Under the pieces are notes generated by a model. The model was not told the origin of the DNA and made no database searches. It saw only the letters and a list, made by a program, of their open reading frames with translations. Made by a program: the position numbers and the translations under genes. A DNA stretch of 64,000 bases from Oopsacas minuta. Its lineage: Eukaryota; Animalia; Porifera. Shown here in pieces: positions 20,201 to 35,200 of the stretch (the stretch's first letter is position 1; every line of letters starts with the position of its first letter). The stretch is taken from NCBI GenBank assembly GCA_024704765.1, contig JAKMXF010000277.1:434001-498000 (forward strand), written 5' to 3'.

Positions 20201-23200
20201 TCCATTCTGACTTGTGACAATAGTCGGAAAATCGATTCTAACTTGTTACAATAGACTCATATTGATTCTAACTTGTTACAATTCAGAAAATTTTAACTAA
20301 TAACAACCTTATAATTCTAACTAAAGCATGCACACCTTGGGAACTTCGTAATACAGGACTTACAACTGATTTGGATCATGGATGGTAAGTAGATTGTAAT
20401 GTACTATTATTATATTTTGAATGGGAGGAATAGTGAGAAATTATTCTGATAATTGAACGTTTTATATGCATGCAATTACATTCTGTAACAACTTCACTTA
20501 TCTATTATCAAAATTGTCGAATGTTATCAAACAATAGAGCATCTTTTGGTTGATTTAGGTATTTTTAATGAAAATATACCTTATTCATTACAGGTAGTAC
20601 TCCAATAGTTAAACAGATGATATATGTATTTATTAATCATTTACTGAAACAATCCAATATTAGCTAAGATTGGAATTTCTTTAATTTCCTGTTGTTCTCC
20701 ATATTAGAAGTTCTTTTTGAAGATTTGAGTACCTTGAGTGAATTTAACTTTCGAACTTTATTTGTCAGAATACAATTAAAGATGGTACAAAGTTTTTCTT
20801 CAATATATCCCATTTAACCTTGAGACAGTTGTCACACTTACTTCTCTAAGACTCTGCTAGAGACGATGTATCTTCTATTTGATAGTAGAGATAGATACAT
20901 TAATTTTTGAGTGGTTGATGAACAAATTTGTTGAATAATATCGGTTGTACTTCAATTGCAGTAAATATTTTCCAAAGGAGAATGCACGATTCTAGAACTT
21001 CTAAAGCTGGATACTTTAATCCTCCTCGATCTGTTATTTGAATGAATTGTTCTTCTAAATGAATATCTCTCTGTTTGGTTAAACTAGCAAAGCATTCTCC
21101 GCACCTATCTTTGTATTTAGAGTATGTAGAACGGATAGCGTATCCAGCTACAAATGCCAATGCTAGGAGAGTAGTTTCGTATACTTCAGGAAGGAGATTA
21201 CAATTGTCCAACAGAGACAAGAAATCTTCAATTGGATGAATTTCAACTGGTACTTCTTCTGAGGAAAATGTCTTAATGAAGTCCTTAAGTGACATTTCTC
21301 GATCAGTTTCCTTCTGAAATAACTTTAAAATTGAAGAAAGCTTCAGCTTACGCTCACTTTCAAGGATTTGGAGGATAGATATATTGTACTGAGCACCTGA
21401 CATTTGTCGATAAACTCCAAAACGGTGTTCAAGTGGATCGTTCTGAAGACGGGAGGATAGAATATAAGCGAAACTACATGTCTCACTTGTAAGATAGTTA
21501 ACTATTAGAGGTAGCACTAAACAAGAATGTCTGAAACTAGAGAAAGTTTGAGGTGTTAACTTTCCTTATCAGGAAGCAATTTCCAAGTATCTAGCTATTA
21601 AACAACTTTATCAAGAAAAAAACGTTCATCATTGTTAATGAGTGGGTTTGAAAAGGAATCTCTTAAGCGCTCTCCTTTAATTGGACTGTTAACATTGAAG
21701 ATTTTCCAAATATGAACGATAACGTCTAAAATTCGTGAGTCTGAGATACAATAGCAGCACCCTGTAGTTGTTTATTTACCCTCAAGGTAACGTTCGTCGA
21801 TTCGCTAAAGAATGCCTACGCAAGAATAACATTTTGCCTCTCTAAATTGGTAGGCCAGCAAACTTTTGCAATCAATTTATAAGCTTGCTTCAAGGTGGAA
21901 GAGTGCTCAAGTCTGTATTGATTCCTAATATCTTCAAGGAAGCTCTGGACACAGACTGGTAAATTAGAGTTAATATTATCTTCAAAAGAAGGAAAAATAA
22001 AACTACACTGAGCATCACGTTGGTTGAGCCAATTGTTACGAATACATTTAATGATGTGGACAAAATCAAAAATGAGGAATAAAGGACGATTGGGGTCACA
22101 AGGATAAGGAACTGATTGTTCGGTTACATGCTTGCGCGATAATAATTTGAATAAACTTTGATTTAGCGGTAAGTTATCTCTACATAATATCACAACATTG
22201 AGATTGCACTTTTCAATATCAGTTATAACAGTAGTCACTATCTCAAAAACTTCTTAGCATCTGTACAGGCAAGTGGATATAGTCGAATTATTCCACTCCA
22301 TTTTTCGAAAGACTAGTAACCATGAAAGCTAGTACAGTTTTTGCCGCTACTTCTACATTCGAACTGGACGAGCCATAAATCTTTCCTCCTTTATAGCTAA
22401 AGTCAGACTGTGCATAAACCTCATCGATGTTTAATACAAGCTGACGTTGTTGTTTAGTAAACTTCGCAGTTGATTTAATGAGAAATTCTTTAAACTCGTA
22501 TTCCAAACCTGATTTTGAAGTAAGATTACGTAATGTAGATTGATGTGGAAGTGTAAGACATAGAGAAGTTTGAAGAAAACTATAACAAGCAGGGGAAATA
22601 AGTTAGCCTTTTAAGCAAGTGTCAGAGTGATCACATTGTATCTACATATATGCTTGGGAAGTAAGATATTTGCAAGTTGGCATAGTATAAATTGGAGACG
22701 AGGGATTGTTGATAATGCATCAGATTCATGATTAAGTTCAAACTTATCAATTGAAGATTGAAGATTAACAGTAGCTTGTTTGATTTCTTTTGGGAATCAT
22801 TTTGATGGTAGCTCGAAATATCATTAATAGAGGAATCAATTTCACGAACAGTCAAAAGTAGATCTTCTTCCCTGAAATCTTTAATACAGACAAAAATTGT
22901 TTGTAATTCAGATACATTGTCACGACATAAGTGCTTCAACCACATTTTAGCTAGCTCGGAATCTTTATGCAAAGTAAAGACAGTGTAGGTATTCTTTGAT
23001 CCAGGATAATTACTTTTACAATTTGGTACTGAACAACAATTTGGCATCGTGAATTAAGCTATATGCAAGAACTGAGGAATTAAAGTAGGATTAGGATGAA
23101 ATTATCATGAGTAATCTGAATTAGTACGAAAGCAAATATGAAAATGTCAAATAAGCGAATATATAACACGGGTAACTGAAAAAACATTATGACAAAAAAA

Positions 23201-26200
23201 ATGGGGTCGTTGAGATTTTTTCACTTTCTTATACAGAATTTTATGAGGAATCCGAATATACGCTCCAAAAATTTTTCCTACCGTTAAAATTTTTTTACAG
23301 ATCATACAAAAATTTATGAAATAAAAAAAATTCTGGCTATAATAATTTTAACATATCCCCATTTTTAATATATTATCGTGATTCTTCGTTGGTATACTTC
23401 TTTCTAGAATTCAATTTAATTACTAGTTACCTAATAGAATTGATGTTTTTAACGAATTCCTATCCAAAATGTCATTACCATGGCAACAAAATGAAACGTA
23501 GGAATTTACGCAATAGTTTTCAATCTAGCTAAGTAGTACTTGTATGATATTACATTTAGGATATATACGTGTAATTATTGATTAATTCAGTTAAAGCAAA
23601 TGAGTGAAGAAACGAAACATGAACATGCCAAAACTAGAATTTGTCGCTGGTGTTGTTCGAAAGTTGGCAAAATAGTTTTGAGGAATAATCACCTAAAGGA
23701 CACTAAGTTAGGTGAATTATACAACCAATATTCGGAACCAATCAATATTTTAGAAGATAATCGCCCTTATATCGTGTGTAATACTTGTAAGCTCTACTTG
23801 TTTACTCTGTCCTCAGGGGATACGACGAGGAAAACACCTGCACAATATGATTGGCCCTTAATTCGTAACACGCGCTTAAACACCTGCCGCATTGGGAACT
23901 TATGTTCAATGTGTACCGAGAGTTCAAGGTTCGGTCGCAAGAATCAAGCTTCATCTTCGATAATCCATATAAAGCCAGGAAGACCAACAATCAATTCACC
24001 TCAAAAGACAATCAGGATATGTAACAAATGTGCGAGTCGTGTTAGTCCTGGAGTTAGTCATATCTGTTTGAAAAAGACATTGATTACCAACGCACATAAT
24101 ATGTTGGAACACCATAACTCTATTGATACATTCGTTGGTGATAATGTATACCAAAGATTACATGAATGTAGCCACAACAAATCTTCAATTCATTTGCCTA
24201 AAACTTCAGGTGGGAATCCGTTTCATCTTTCTATCTCCTCTTCCAGTACTGACGAACGTCCAGCTAAAGTACCAAAAATTGATTTCTCTCACATCGCGAA
24301 TTTGAAGTGTTCAGGAATGTCATTGTCTAATAAGCAGTTAAAGGTAGTAACTCGAATTATTAGAGATGTTCGAGTACCATGTCCATCAATGGATAGCTAC
24401 TATAGAGAACGACATTTGTTGTGCGACGAAATATTCGAATGCATCCAGATTGAGCTGGACTATAGTAAAGAGAAATACAAGTCAGAATATAGGAACTCCT
24501 GGATAGTGAGATGTTGCAATATCGATGCCCTGATAGAAAAGATCTTTAATATCAGCGGAGAAATATCGGTACATGATCTTCATTTCAAGCTTGGATTAGA
24601 CTTTGGTCGTGGTTTCACTAAACTACTTATGTGTCTACAGAATGATAATTCTGTCGATAACCTGGTTTATCTATGGGTTATGAGTGCCCCTGAGTGTAAT
24701 TATAACTTCTCCGTTATGCTTCAAGATGACCAGATAAAACGGCTGATGGAAGAATACAACGTTTCATTTACGGTAGATTTGAAAGCTGCTAGTTATTGCT
24801 TGGGAATAATGAACGGACGTCACCCTTGTATATGGTGTACTTGGGACAATAGAAGGGGTTTAGACAGTGTTCAGTGGGAAGAACGATCATCTGCTCACCA
24901 TCTAGAGATGTTTCAAAAGCTTCAAGATATGTATCAGGGAGATTCTAAGAATCATGCAATTGACTGCGATGGTATTGAGGATTGCCAAGCACTAAATGTA
25001 TGGCTGGTAGATTTCATGCAAATGTTTAATCTTCCCGAGTTACATCTGTTACTTGGGATAGGACAGAAGTCATACGATGCCATCCTCATCACAATGTCTG
25101 AGGACGAAAAAGAACACCATGAAGCAATACTAAAAAAACTGAATATTCATAGAAGTGCTTACCATGGAGGAGCATTTGAAGGTAATGCAATGAGGAAAAT
25201 CACAAAGGAGGTATTGGAACTCGGGTTTCCAAAGAGTAATTCGTCTTATATCACGCTTGTAAAATTCAGGGATGTTGTTGATTCTTGCTTCGGGAAACAC
25301 ATAAAGGGAGATTTCAAAATGACAGTATATCATTTTGAATAATCATTTAAACAATCAGGACTTTCTTGCTCTACAAAAGTTCATGTTCTATGTAGGCACC
25401 TAATTCCGTTTATCACGAATTATCTTCCAGATGGAATGGGTTTAGGATCAGTTTCAGAACAAGCATTTGAATCTGCCCATTCTAGATTTGGCAGAGTTTG
25501 GGGGACAAGATATAAATGTCAAGAGGAAAATGAAAAATTTCCAGAGTGCTTATTAAACACAGTATCAGATGTTAACTTCGTCAATTTCATAAATAAATCA
25601 TAGTATGATAAGCTAGGTCATGTTCTACATTACACTATATTTGGAATAAAAATAATTGGTTAAGTTAAGGTTAAGCATCAATAATTACACGTATATATCC
25701 TAAATGTAATATCATACAAGTACTACTTAGCTAGATTGAAAACTATTGCGTAAATTCCTACGTCTCATTTTGTTGCCATGGTAATGACATTTTGGATAGG
25801 AATTCGTTAAAAACATCAATTCTATTAGGTAACTAGTAATTAAATTGAATTCTAGAAAGAAGTATATCAGGGAAGAATCACAATAATATATTAAAAATGG
25901 GGATATGTTAAAATTATTTTAGCCAGAATTTTTTTGATTTCATAAATTTTTGTATAATCTGTAAAAAAAATTTTAATGGTAGGAAAATTTTTTGGAGCGT
26001 ATATTCGGATTCCTCATAAAATTCTGTATAAGAAAGTGAAAAAATCTCAACGACCTCATTTTTTTTGTCATAATGTTTTTTCAGTTACCCGTGATAACTA
26101 AATAAATAGCATTATTTACATACAAAAGTGTATTTAAATATTGTGGTTATTTTTAATTGTGTTTATGAAAATTGCATGTTGTAGTTGCATAAATATTACC

Positions 26201-29200
26201 ATCTAGTTACCATCCATGGTACAGGTCAATCAGGGTCAATGTAAGTCCTGTATTACGAAGTTCCCGGCCTAATTAATTATTTACTACCGCGTTTCGCTTG
26301 CTAGGTCGCTGCGCTACAGCTTGGTACTCCGGGTTAGTTTAGGTATTAAAACACCTAAATTTTATAATGTTATTGGTCGTACGCAACGGAATATACTCCG
26401 TATTACGTGCCTCGACATCACAGAATAGCTAAAATTTAAATATTTTATTATCCATGGTCCATGAAAATTATATTTAATTGCCTTCTGTTGTAATATTGGC
26501 GCTTCCACGTCGCTTTTGGATAATAGACTGTGCTATTTGCGCCTCGAGTATATATAATTTCAAATGTTTCGAAATTTGGAAAATTTAGATTTTGTACAGT
26601 CATAATGATGAGCTAGTATTTGGTCAAAGTCATGATGTCAGAACGTGTGGCATTTTGAGGGTTACCTGTTATTTAAATTACTTTTATCCTGTATATATGC
26701 TGAGCAGTGTTGATAATGTGATTGTTGAAATCAAACAAGCTGACAATTACATCATAGTTTCGTAGTTGTCTTCCATTTCGTCTAACACTAGAACTTATCC
26801 GAGCTTGACCCCCCCCTTCTTGTTGCTGAAGGAGTTTATACCTCACTTTGAATTGGAGTTTGCTTGGATTATCTAACTAGATTGCATTTAGCCGGGAATA
26901 TGACCATTTCTTACTCACCATTTGGATTACAGTTGTTGATTTTCATCCCATTATCGTTGGATTTTTGGCCTTGAAAGTTGACTGGAAATATCTCTCCGGT
27001 ACCGCAATTCATACATCGTCCCGAGAACCAAATAGAAAGTGATTGGTTTGCACAAATACTACCAAATGTCTTATTCACTCTTTGTTACCGGAAACACCTA
27101 TATGCGGTCTAGTTAGATTATTCAATTATTTCCAATTCAATCAACTTCTTAGTGAGTTAGAAACACACTTAGCAACATGAAAGGTGTCAAGGAAACTTCC
27201 GGCCAACCCTCAAGGCTAAGATCTAACGATTATACCTTGAAAATCCACAACACTTCCATCCGAATACTCAAAAAATACTAACCTCTGATTTTCGAACAAA
27301 TGACAACAAAGAAATTCGAACAATTGAAAGAGCTTCACACATACATACATACATACATACATACATACATACATACATACATACATACATACATACATAC
27401 ATACATACATACATACATCATACATACATACAACACATACATACATACATACATACATACATACATACATACATACATACATACATACATACATACATAC
27501 ATACATACATACATACTACATACATACATACATCTCATACATACATACATACATACATACATACATACATACATACATACATACATACATACATACATAC
27601 ATACATACATACATACATACATACATACATACAAATTTATTGCGTTCTAATAGTCGAGATATTGCTCTTCAAAAATGCAGTTATGTATTTGATGCTTAGA
27701 ACTGGCATTGTTTTTATTTTTCCTATTTTTAGTGCTCTTTTATTTTTTCATATTTCCTATCGATTAGGCGAGCTGAAAGAGAGTCTATTACTCCAAAATG
27801 AAAACAAAAAAATTCCTGTACTACTTCCAAACGATAGAGCGGTGGTTGACTTAATTCTCAAATACTCTCAACTAGACTCGATAGTAGATAAAGAAATCGG
27901 TAGTTTAATACATAAAGCTGCTGCTGAGGATAACGTTTTATTAGCCAATGCATTAGTCGAAAAAAATATAGAATTGCAGGTAGTCAACAGTAAGGGATTT
28001 TCTCCCCTAAAAATAGCTTCGAAGCGTGGTAACATTGGAGTAGTCAAAGTGTTACTAAATGCAGGTGCGGATCCGAACTATATTGGTAAGAAAGTCCCAG
28101 GCTTTTCAGCTTTAAATAACGCAGTACAATTTGGCCAGTTAGCATGCGCAAAATTATTAATTGATTTCGGAGCGAATCTTGTTCATAGTGATATGACGAA
28201 CACAGCTCTACATTCTGCTTCATACGGCGGTCACCCCGATGTAGTGGAATTCTTAATAAGAGATGTTGGTATGGATGTTAACCAACGGAATAACGCAAAT
28301 AGAACTCCTCTATACCAGTCTATCACCCAAGGACATTACTCTGTAGCCAAAGTGTTGCTCGGACTAGGGGCTGATCCTAATGTTGCCTTAACTGCTGAAA
28401 ATGAGACACTAGTGCATATAGCTGTGAGAGAGGGTGAGAAGGAAATTCTTACATTATTGTTAGAAGCAAAGGCAAGACCAGACGAGGCATTGCGTAATGG
28501 AACAACTCCACTGATGCTTGCAGTGCAAGCTGATCGTGCCGATTATATCCCATTAATAATGGCATACGGTATAACTTTGGCCAAGAAGGATCAGGAAGGC
28601 GAAACGATACTGCATCACATCGCGAGGAATGATTCTTGTGATTCTGCAAAGTATATTCTCAAGAGAATTGGAGCTATGAAGGGTATTACACAGGAATTTC
28701 AAATATTTAAGAATAAAAATGAGCATGGTAAATCTGCTTATGATATTGCTATAGAGTGTCACAGTGAAAGGGTACTTAAAATATTCATTCGACATTCCCC
28801 AAAGAATTACTTCAGAAACAACACTCAACAAATACACAGATTCTATGATAAAAAGCTATACGATACTCTCAAGGAAATATTATCTGGCTTAGTCTCATTT
28901 GATGAGGAAAACGGTGAGTTTAACAATTGTTTTATCGATTATTCTTTAGTATAAGGCTCAGTCATGGCCTCCTCTAATATAAGGCCTGCCAACTCTTGCG
29001 AATCCTTCCCAGGGATGGGGGCCGGCGATGAAGGTGATACTTTCAATATTGCTGGAACAGTTCATTTTGTCCCGAGAAATGTATTGTATATTCGTAGAAC
29101 AATAATATATGTTAAAGTAAGCATTTATTTGGTAAATTTGTCATTCTTTGTTGCCTTGTAGTCTGTTAAATATTCCATCTTTCACATCAAAGTGAATATA

Positions 29201-32200: not shown

Positions 32201-35200
32201 ATCAAATAGTGTCAGTTCACACGCAAGTTTCTTACCCTAAATCCAATTGAATTTCAATTAGTTTCTTGCTAATCATCGATATTGCGCCTCGAGGTATCCA
32301 TTATTCTCCAAATTGACGGCCCCTTTGAATATTCAAAAATATAGATATTGGAACAATGTAATTCACAAATATACGTATATGGCATAAATGTTATTGAATT
32401 ATTTTGTAAGATCAACCATCTGTGTAGTGGCGAGAGCAAATATCTACATAAATTTGATATTTGGCTAATTAGTTTCCTTTATATTCGTAAAACAACGATA
32501 AATTTACATATGAGAAACTTGAAAATGCGAAATTCGGGTTCAGCGTAATGTGTTAACCCTGTGTTGCTTCTTTAGAGCAAGCCTATTCATAAAATCAACA
32601 ATAAATTTGCATATGAGAAACTTAAAATGCGAAATTCGGATTCAGCGTACTTAGTTACCCTTGGGTAGCCGTTTAGAGCAAGCCTGTATTTATATTGTGA
32701 GATTTGGCTAATTTGTTTACTATTTACACATAAAAACAACAATAAAATTACATATGATTAATCCAAGAGTGTCAATATCCGATTCAGCATGTTCGATATA
32801 TTTAGTGAAGTTTATTCAATTCTATTTTCTTACTTGATTAACACGATAAGTACATAGTTATGCGACTATTTCAAAATTGCATGCCGTAAATCCTTCCTTG
32901 ACAACGGACAAACAGACAGACAGAAAACAATTGGGATTTATTGATGTAGATATTTTTATGTTTGGATGTCCAGAATTGATTGAAGAAACTGGGGAACCCC
33001 CAGGACTGATTTTTGACATACCTGGGTATTTTTGGTCTGTCTCGGACATTTTCGAGTCTTGCACAAAAATTCACACATGTGACGTCATTGTCACCTTTTT
33101 AGATGTTCGAAAAATTACATTATCAGCTATTGCTCAGCCAATATCTATGATATGTGGTTGAAAATTTAATCACAAGTACACTTCATTATGCCACAGGTCC
33201 TGTCATGATTTTGACTCCATGCGAACCCATCATGGAATGATTACATCATCCTGACTGTACAAAAATAACTAAATTTCCCGAATTCGAAATTTTTTAGAAT
33301 ATAATTTACTCGAGGACAGAGGTGTCGATATTACTAGATTACAGCGACATAGCAGCTCAGGTGTCACCAAAGAAGGCCATTGAATGTACTTTAGATGGAC
33401 CATGGATAAAATTTCTGCTATTTTCTACACTCGAAGCGCGAAGACCAAGTATACCCCCTTCGCGTAACGACCAAATGCACCATGAAGTTTAGTTTTTGTT
33501 GATTAATTATGCAAACTGAGACTAAAAGCTGTCGCGCAGCCACCTTGCAATCGAAGCGCGCTGGTATATATATATATATGCACAGATTAATTGCGTTTTA
33601 TAATATAAATATATATCATAGACTCTCCTTTAGATGAGGACTGTAGGACTCATTTTCGGGACCTGAAACTTTGGTACATTAGTGTTTCGTAATTGGTTAA
33701 AGTTAGACACATAATATGTACTATTGTCGAACAGGAAGTCTTAGCAATAATCTTCAGAGATATCATATCAATATATATTAGCAGGGTATAAGAAGTTGGG
33801 TGTATACTATAGAATGGCTATCCTGATTTGACCATAATTTCTGCGATTATCTAGTTATAAGAGGATATTAACAAAATACTTGTTTTTTTACATATCAAAA
33901 TACATTTATTCTGGTGAAAATGAACCAATTTCATATTCTTGGCGATTAAGGATTTTCCCATCAAAATATCTACTTCCTTTTATTCCTGGTCTAAAGTAGT
34001 GATCAGGCCTTATCTTTAGTAGGCTATGGCTTAACCAATCCTTGGCCATTGTCTTTGTTTTTTAGAATGCTATAGGTGAATCAACATGACCCACGAATTC
34101 ACTATATAACTATTATTCAACGATAATACATTTATACATGTAGCTAGAAATAATTACGAGATTTAAACTAATTTACAATACTGGAAAAAGGTGTGAAAAC
34201 CGCATGACTCACATTCCGCAAATATTTAGGGCCTATTAATATGACCAATTGACACCATAACTATGACTTCCTATTCGACATGAGTATATTGTATCTGTCT
34301 TACTTTACCGATTACGATATAGTGTATACCAATTAATCCAAGAATGAGTGCCTACATTCCTTAGTTCAAGGTGTATTTGATATATACACTTATATATATT
34401 GATTGCGTTTTAATAGTATATACTTTTGAGAGCAATTGTATAAATATAATCCACCAACACTCAATAGCATCAAAAAGAAAATTATATCAAAATAATAATG
34501 AGATGCCAATCAAATATCACATCATAGTTATTGACACGTTTGGAAATTTTCAAAACCGTAATGCTAAGTCATCACACTTATTTTACAATTTTGATGACAT
34601 TTTCGTCTTCCAACGCTATTCTTTCGAATAATATCAAGTTTTTTCCTCTAGCTATACGGAAAGTCTCATATAATCGATTGAAGTGAACATGTTCATTTAG
34701 TTTAAATTCGTTGCTAACTTCTTCGTTATTTTAATAGATCTTAAGAAATTGAACCTCGAAATGACTGAAATAGGCTTATTACACTTGTAATAAGGTCTAT
34801 TTTTATTATTAACCTATTTTCTACTCATCCTATTACTCAGATTATGATTAGTAAGATTTATGCGCATTAATTATTATCAACTGTTCCTTAAGGATGACCG
34901 ACGACCAATCAGTTCGGGTCCATGGGCGTAGCGCCGGGGGCCTGACACCAAAAATTCTCATTAGGCCCCTCCAAAAATTTTTGAATATATTGATCATACT
35001 AAGGGATAGTTGAAAATGAATAGATTTTGACCAGCTGTGCCCCCTAGAATTAAGCCAGGCCCCTCAAAAATCCTGTTGTTGCTACGTGCTCATGGTCGGG
35101 TCATAAGCAACTGACCGGTTCCATCTCTTCTCTTCACCACCATCAGTGTGATTTAATTGTATAGTTACGGAATCTATTTTATTTTACAATTCTGAAATCG

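Follow-up and report, generated by a model that had tools for sequence, protein, structure and literature searches.

The stretch of DNA analysed here, which we call the window, comprises 64,000 nucleotides of the genome of the glass sponge Oopsacas minuta (assembly GCA_024704765.1, contig JAKMXF010000277.1, positions 434,001 to 498,000). Between positions 23167 and 26093 it carries a 2927-bp element that is very probably a slightly decayed copy of a recently active Chapaev-group cut-and-paste transposon. The element holds one transposase frame, broken by a single stop codon, that joins a predicted double zinc finger of the RAG1 N-terminal type to a core modelled with the RAG1/Transib fold. Its features are listed below in window coordinates and window residue numbering; motif conservation refers to an alignment of 40 relatives for the core and to 52 relatives for the N-terminus.

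23163–23166: left target-site duplication (TSD), ATAA; the same 4 bp follow the right end.
23167–26093: probable Chapaev element, window copy, 2927 bp.
23167–23583, plus strand: left terminal inverted repeat (TIR), ~ 416 bp, terminus CACGGGTAACTG; defined by alignment of both ends, with sibling homology starting at 23167.
23600–25339, plus strand: transposase frame, part 1, an open reading frame (ORF) of 580 amino acids (aa) with the zinc fingers, both catalytic aspartates, CxxC and LH; annotated as P0183 in the O. minuta assembly.
23618–23914, plus strand: predicted Chapa/NZD-like double zinc finger with conserved ligands; ZFa C15, C18, C60 and C63, ZFb H7, C96, C102 and C105.
24020–24067, plus strand: predicted extra CCHC zinc knuckle, C141, C144, H154 and C156; present in 47 of 52 relatives and modelled with a predicted local distance difference test score (pLDDT) of ~ 95.
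24599–24601, plus strand: D334, first catalytic aspartate (LDFGRGF); D-x-G is invariant, and the assignment comes from superposition of the whole core on RAG1, not from residue-level mapping.
24776–24778, plus strand: D393, second catalytic aspartate (VDLK); invariant, aligned to RAG1 D708.
24827–24838, plus strand: C410-x2-C413, the C(2)C motif; invariant, aligned to RAG1 C727/C730.
25040–25045, plus strand: L481-H482, the LH motif (PELHLLLG); invariant.
25340–25342, plus strand: in-frame TAA breaking the transposase; CAA in the sibling copy L003 and AAA in copy L001.
25343–25602, plus strand: transposase frame, part 2 (86 codons, 25343–25600), with H(4)H and the catalytic glutamate; TAG at 25601–25603.
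25382–25399, plus strand: the H(4)H pair, aligned to RAG1 H937/H942.
25454–25480, plus strand: SEQAFESAH, downstream of the TAA; the catalytic glutamate of FES (25469–25471) is aligned to RAG1 E962.
25677–26093, minus strand: right TIR, terminus CAGTTACCCGTG; defined by alignment of both ends.
26094–26097: right TSD, ATAA, read directly from the sequence.

The window copy begins with CACGGGTAACTG at 23167 and runs up to CAGTTACCCGTG at 26093, the latter being the exact reverse complement of the former, and CACGGG…CCCGTG are the termini of the element. No difference separates the two ends in their first 37 bp, and their alignment extends over 416 bp with 11 mismatches and 1 indel; similarity is lost abruptly at the inner edges (23583 and 25677). 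An earlier reading of these letters alone (the sequence-only reading) had proposed TIRs of ~ 416 bp with about a dozen mismatches, CACGG termini and an ATAA TSD, and was accurate on each of these points. The terminal 27 bp occur exactly twice in the 64-kb window, compared with 0 occurrences expected by chance. Independent support for the boundaries comes from six sibling copies in the genome, whose homology begins and ends exactly at 23167 and 26093. In the sequencing contigs (Logan contigs, four runs, one sample) many different flanks abut these same two positions, one of them being the AAGC flank of copy L001. A reading of the terminus as a 12/23-like heptamer/nonamer signal was tried and rejected, as the first 37 bp do not differ between the ends and the spacing of the A-tracts is neither 12 nor 23 bp.

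The element is present in multiple copies. One cluster at 90% identity contains 26 gene models, namely the window's own 580-aa ORF and 25 O. minuta proteins that are annotated only as hypothetical. From DNA fetched around six cluster members in the same assembly, we recovered five further full-length copies (L001, L003, L004, L006 and L008; 95.7–98.8% DNA identity to the window copy), one 5′-truncated copy (L007) and one fragment (L005). In pairwise comparison the full-length copies differ from the window copy by 1.2–4.1%. The copies diverge in a star-like pattern around L003, which is an intact sister of the window copy (P0187, KAI6661451.1, LOD99_13323; 667 aa, 98.8% DNA identity). The L003 element occupies L003:2067–4994 (GCA_024704765.1 JAKMXF010000011.1, within 300022–307025, reversed), has an uninterrupted stretch of 673 codons and only 6 private substitutions, and its TIRs are near-perfect (2 differing sites and 1 indel). 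The suspicion that an intact sibling might exist was therefore borne out, and the copies are not all degenerate. A related family, L002 (L002:2563–5178; ENA ERZ25071281, contig ctg49220), is 68% identical at the DNA level and shares the CACGGGTAACTG terminus; its TIRs measure 131 bp (99% identity), its TSD is CATA, and its 666-aa ORF is intact. The 90% cluster of L002 holds several more intact 666-aa members (P0162, P0164, P0174), so that this family looks active in another organism. The CACGGG…CCCGTG termini recur in four of the five other full-length copies and in L002; L004 has CAAGGG at one end. The 4 bp to the left and right of the full-length elements read as follows.

Window copy: ATAA / ATAA.
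L001: AAGC / AAGC.
L004: ATCG / ATCG.
L008: GTGA / GTGA.
L002 (68%-identical family, another ENA assembly): CATA / CATA.
L003: GTAT / TATA, a 3-bp match (TAT).
L006 (oldest copy): TGTG / TAGG, degraded.

Perfect 4-bp duplications of mutually unrelated sequence thus flank five of the seven full-length elements, which settles both the length of the TSD and the mobility of the family. The sequence-only reading had made its assignment depend on a 4-bp TSD at other copies; it is perfect at L001, L004 and L008, as well as at the related L002.

The transposase is encoded by a single intronless gene of 667 codons (580, the TAA and 86) in which the TAA at 25340–25342 is the only break, exactly as had been proposed from the sequence. 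The ATG at 23600 is located 16–17 bp past the inner edge of the left TIR, and the left TIR holds all of the element's sequence upstream of it, including a TATATA at 23562–23567. Between the TIRs there is a single long ORF, and none of the other ORFs of at least 60 aa has homologues. The broken frame was searched as two pieces and compared position by position with the sibling, with an X at the break. Matches to the 580-aa piece comprise a 90%-identical O. minuta protein and intact relatives of 664–666 aa from other assemblies (61–68% identity). As the TAA precedes both H-x4-H and the catalytic glutamate, the product would miss one catalytic residue and some of the zinc ligands. The window-copy protein differs from that of the sibling at 13 amino acids in addition to the stop. 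At the DNA level the window copy has 23 private substitutions and 0 private indels, plus the TAA; within the frame 12 of 15 private changes alter the protein and 3 are silent, a ratio that fits neutral decay after insertion. With the TAA and 12 further private amino-acid changes, the window copy is predicted to be dead as a gene. Two expectations of the sequence-only reading were not upheld. The window copy was thought to be young, yet it is not the youngest (23 private substitutions versus 6 in L003), and its resurrection by repair of one codon would not restore the sibling sequence, given the 12 other protein-altering changes.

We consider it improbable that the TAA was introduced in assembly or polishing and that the window copy is actually intact. 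Every Logan contig covering 25340 reads C there, so that the codon would be CAA, the one present in the intact sibling. However, the same contigs show the family-majority letter at essentially every other position that is private to the window copy (for example 23629, 23733, 23844 and 24010, and further 24119, 24983 and 25071), from which it follows that they are collapsed over the family and can neither confirm nor refute the TAA of this copy. Contig depth inside the element is ~ 20–100 times that of the flanks. Rare variants are dropped by contigs by construction, and the 12 protein-changing substitutions against 3 silent ones are in keeping with neutral decay.

The C-terminal 440 residues of the transposase are modelled as a complete RAG1/Transib core fold, with an RNase-H-like D-D-E site and an embedded CxxC/Hx4H zinc site. 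An exhaustive representative search placed the relatives in 402 clusters, many of them of 650–700 aa and ~ 25% identity. Invariant or nearly so in the alignment of 40 relatives are D334-x-G, E365, D393-x-K, C410-x2-C413, L481-H482, H-x4-H and S-E-Q-A-x-E-S-x-H; H-x4-H and the glutamate of ES-x-H are at least 90% conserved. Against the PDB, the core profile matched amphioxus RAGL (6b40, E 3.6e-6), mouse and zebrafish RAG1 (E ∼ 2e-3) and HzTransib (E 0.03), and its alignment pairs D393, the CxxC, the HxxxxH and the FES glutamate with the RAG1 residues listed above. The third catalytic motif therefore does lie just after the stop, where the sequence-only reading had put it.

An AlphaFold2 model of the core of an intact relative (P0001, residues 225–665) has a pLDDT of 94.2 and a predicted template modelling score of 0.91. 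In Foldseek, this model gave 49 hits at E ≤ 0.001 (1e-11 to 5e-6), every one of them RAG1, RAGL or Transib, and the P element transposase follows at E 0.011. VIA-align superposed 412 of 441 residues on RAG1 463–1004 (Z 24.7, root mean square deviation 3.7) and 371 residues on HzTransib (Z 23.6). The Z score was 21.3 for amphioxus BbRAGL, 13.3 for the P element and 9.0 for Hermes. The structural comparison suggested beforehand thus led to RAG1, RAGL and Transib and not to an unrelated superfamily, and together with the profile match to RAGL it supports the RAG1/Transib-like core that had been claimed. Two observations on more distant relatives stand beside these results. The Pfam family DUF1280, a nematode family whose function is not known, matches 10 of 40 family members (best E 6.4e-7); our guess is that it may be derived from a Chapaev/CMC transposase. 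A complete 679-aa homologue with zinc finger and core (P0016; 33% identity) is found in the EukProt transcriptome of the non-animal protist Pompholyxophrys punicea; it stems either from a Chapaev-like transposase outside Metazoa or from contamination or prey.

The N-terminus of the transposase is, as judged by its conserved ligands, a double zinc finger of the RAG1-NZD/Chapa type followed by a CCHC knuckle. Across the 52 relatives the ligand order is H-x7-C-x2-C … C-x2-C … C-x(1-5)-C-x2-C, and the ligands are kept in at least 51 relatives, except for a third cysteine that shifts between 1 and 5 residues before C102. In the mouse RAG1 NZD, ZFa is formed by C110, C113, C175 and C178 and ZFb by H102, H206, C210 and C213 (preprint 10.64898/2026.01.24.700457). 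Both the ligand order and the H-x7-C-x2-C spacing of the sponge N-terminus are the same as in the mouse domain. The gap between the ZFa cysteine pairs is 41 residues, compared with 61 in mouse, which fits the absence of helix H2. Invertebrate RAG1L and type I Chapa domains likewise combine one N-terminal with three C-terminal ligands and are without this helix (preprint 10.64898/2026.01.24.700457). The motif had been given beforehand as H-x7-CRxC; the H-x7-C-x2-C part is conserved, but the arginine is not invariant and occurs in only 18 of 52 relatives.

The fold of this region was modelled for window residues 1–200 (mean pLDDT 81). In the ESM Atlas, a cluster with the Pfam domain RAG1_imp_bd matches residues 4–124 with a template modelling (TM) score of 0.64 by target, whereas clusters with a ZAD cover residues 8–74 only. 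This match and the ligand order bear out the proposal of a RAG1-like N-terminal zinc finger. VIA-align ranks four ZADs highest (Grauzone, CG2712, M1BP and Pita; residues 7–77, Z 3.2–4.8), and ZADs are also the best, though non-significant, Foldseek and profile matches of the domain. Pfam zf-AD (PF07776) matches 23 of 52 family N-termini, and two O. minuta fragments of the Chapaev family are labelled ZAD domain-containing in UniProt. The sponge domain shares the C4 ZFa module (residues ∼ 7–77) with the ZAD. A ZAD, however, binds one zinc and dimerizes, whereas the sponge domain adds a second, interlocked site made of the N-terminal histidine and C-terminal cysteines, as in the NZD. A profile of the N-terminal alignment, searched against a set of 5.8 billion proteins, returned only close family members. 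As a separate observation, an 854-aa echinoderm cluster in the ESM Atlas (P-element/THAP9-type, with a TNP-like RNase H) aligns to residues 4–195 of the N-terminal model with a TM score of 0.48 by query. This model-based match is a hint that Chapa-like zinc fingers may not be confined to one transposase superfamily.

Chapaev transposons were reportedly described by Kapitonov and Jurka in 2007 and are said to fall within the CMC group of Yuan and Wessler (2011). Chapaev families are known from, for example, Branchiostoma, Nematostella and Hydra. The group is characterized by a TSD of 3–4 bp, CAC…GTG termini and the C(2)C, LH and H(4)H motifs (PMC4079192), with the Chapa domain as a further feature (PMC4411706). 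The sponge element has CAC…GTG termini, a TSD in this range (4 bp in five of seven elements), conserved C(2)C, LH and H(4)H motifs around the DDE triad and, by its ligand pattern, an N-terminal Chapa domain. The Chapaev identity given by the sequence-only reading therefore stands, and we put the probability that window 23167–26093 is a copy of an autonomous cut-and-paste Chapaev-group (CMC/Transib-related) family of O. minuta at roughly 0.88.

Several results weigh against this assignment or parts of it. The placement inside the Chapaev clade follows from the hallmarks rather than from a tree. Two of the seven full-length elements (L003 and L006) are without a perfect 4-bp TSD, and a paralogous empty site was not found when 500 bp of each flank were compared with the window and all fetched loci. 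Excision footprints were likewise not seen, and no RNA run was among those found to carry the stretch. A single-sequence Pfam scan of both ORF pieces gave nothing relevant, and a phmmer search of an intact relative against the PDB found nothing. The fold matches of the N-terminus are weak (Foldseek E ∼ 1–2, VIA-align Z < 5, ESM Atlas TM score by query 0.40). The solved RAG1 NZD is absent from its Foldseek matches in the PDB. The hairpin chemistry considered below is suggested by the modelled fold only.

Membership of the Chapaev3 subgroup, rather than of Chapaev proper, is very unlikely. CAC termini are found in Chapaev3 elements too, as are a Chapa domain and the three motifs C(2)C, LH and H(4)H, and the flanks of the intact copy L003 match over 3 bp only (TAT). 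Chapaev3 insertion, however, occurs between A and T and produces 3-bp TWA duplications (PMC4079192). The five elements with perfect TSDs have 4 bp and no TWA pattern (ATAA, AAGC, ATCG, GTGA and CATA).

Transib and ProtoRAG transposons duplicate 5 bp, compared with 4 bp here, and Transib ends are asymmetric and 12/23-like, whereas the first 37 bp of the sponge element are identical at both ends and no such asymmetry is visible. We therefore hold it least likely of all that the element belongs to the canonical Transib or to the RAG-like (ProtoRAG) type: its RAG1-core-like DDE fold resembles HzTransib (Z 23.6) and RAG1 (Z 24.7) to the degree that is typical between these two proteins themselves and its best PDB sequence match is amphioxus RAGL, but similarity to RAG1 and Transib in sequence is detectable by profile only, the element has an NZD-like domain where Transib transposases have none (preprint 10.64898/2026.01.24.700457), and its 2.9 kb hold one ORF instead of paired RAG1L and RAG2L genes within the TIRs.

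Within the Chapaev group, the sponge family shares with the described elements its CAC…GTG termini, the TSD of 3–4 bp, a single transposase and the type I distribution of Chapa ligands. It differs in its hexactinellid host, in the conserved CCHC knuckle after the Chapa domain and in having no RING finger. Its TIRs are also very long, 416 bp as opposed to 131 bp in L002 and 11–19 bp in the Chapaev3 of lizard. A literature search of one searchable library found no description of Chapaev in sponges.

The similarity to RAG1 and amphioxus RAG1L extends over the whole core, which superposes on RAG1 463–1004, and over the NZD-type ligand order including H-x7-C-x2-C. Sequence identity to these proteins is only ~ 12–13%, and the sponge family is without a RAG2 partner, a RING/ZDD and a recognizable nonamer-binding domain; its TSD is 4 bp and not 5, and instead of a host gene it represents a mobile element in multiple copies. 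Compared with the vertebrate RAG1 NZD, the insertion of helix H2 is absent, the third ZFb ligand is cysteine where RAG1 has histidine, and the CCHC knuckle is a feature not described for the RAG1 domain. With HzTransib (PDB 6PQX/6PQN) the element shares the core fold, CAC-type termini and a single-gene, cut-and-paste organization. It differs from HzTransib in the NZD/Chapa domain, the 4-bp TSD and the identity of its terminal 37 bp.

Some neighbouring features were also recorded. An ORF of 138 aa with a THAP domain (Pfam E 2.6e-8) lies on the minus strand of the window at 22631–23047 and ends ~ 120 bp to the left of the Chapaev element, which probably sits inside a P-like transposon. In the right flank, 26278–26593 is an inverted match (67% similar) to 33262–33570, and 26195–26265 is 80% similar to 20339–20400. 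Elsewhere in the genome, copy L004 (JAKMXF010000344.1:134310-143746) lies inside the region covered by a gene model for protein kinase C, probably in an intron, and adjoins a mariner-type transposase gene.

We envisage that the transposase would bind the long TIRs and pair the two ends, with the zinc fingers possibly contacting DNA or a partner. The DNA would be cut at its CAC ends, most probably by the nick and hairpin reaction common to RAG1 and Transib, and integration with a 4-bp staggered cut of the target would give the 4-bp duplication. The promoter may reside inside the left TIR, since the TIR is the only sequence upstream of the gene and TATATA lies 38 bp before the ATG; the sequence-only reading predicts in addition that it is mirrored at the other end and would give antisense transcripts. 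Both termini of the window copy are intact, so the enzyme of the intact sister LOD99_13323 could still mobilize it in trans. More tentatively, we speculate that the family may be currently active in a hexactinellid, though we hold this to be doubtful; if it is, it would represent a RAG2-independent enzyme found in nature in which a type I NZD-like double finger is already combined with a complete core of the RAG1 type.

To our knowledge, no lineage other than RAG1/RAG1L and the Chapaev transposases has retained an NZD-like zinc finger. No experimental work has been carried out on any Chapa domain, according to the 2026 preprint on the NZD structure (10.64898/2026.01.24.700457). Horizontal transfer occurs in Chapaev elements (PMC4079192), so an ancient origin cannot be deduced from the sponge host alone. 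Should a phylogeny reveal vertical inheritance and deep branching of the sponge lineage, this would favour the Kapitonov–Koonin view, in which the fusion of NZD/Chapa domain and core predates the split of Chapaev, Transib and RAG, and would argue against the domain having been captured independently. Published accounts already cover Chapaev elements, their RAG1-like core and the link between Chapa and NZD, and the picture of RAG origins is unchanged by our results. What the sponge family supplies is a high-confidence model in which the whole Chapaev core, and not motifs alone, superposes on RAG1 and Transib, a ligand-by-ligand match of the N-terminus to the solved NZD, and an intact natural gene, with near-perfect TIRs, that could be expressed and assayed and comes from an early-branching animal host. 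It thus adds a well-characterized data point and a candidate experimental system, in which the intact natural copy would be a tractable protein for the first biochemical test of the role of the NZD/Chapa domain.

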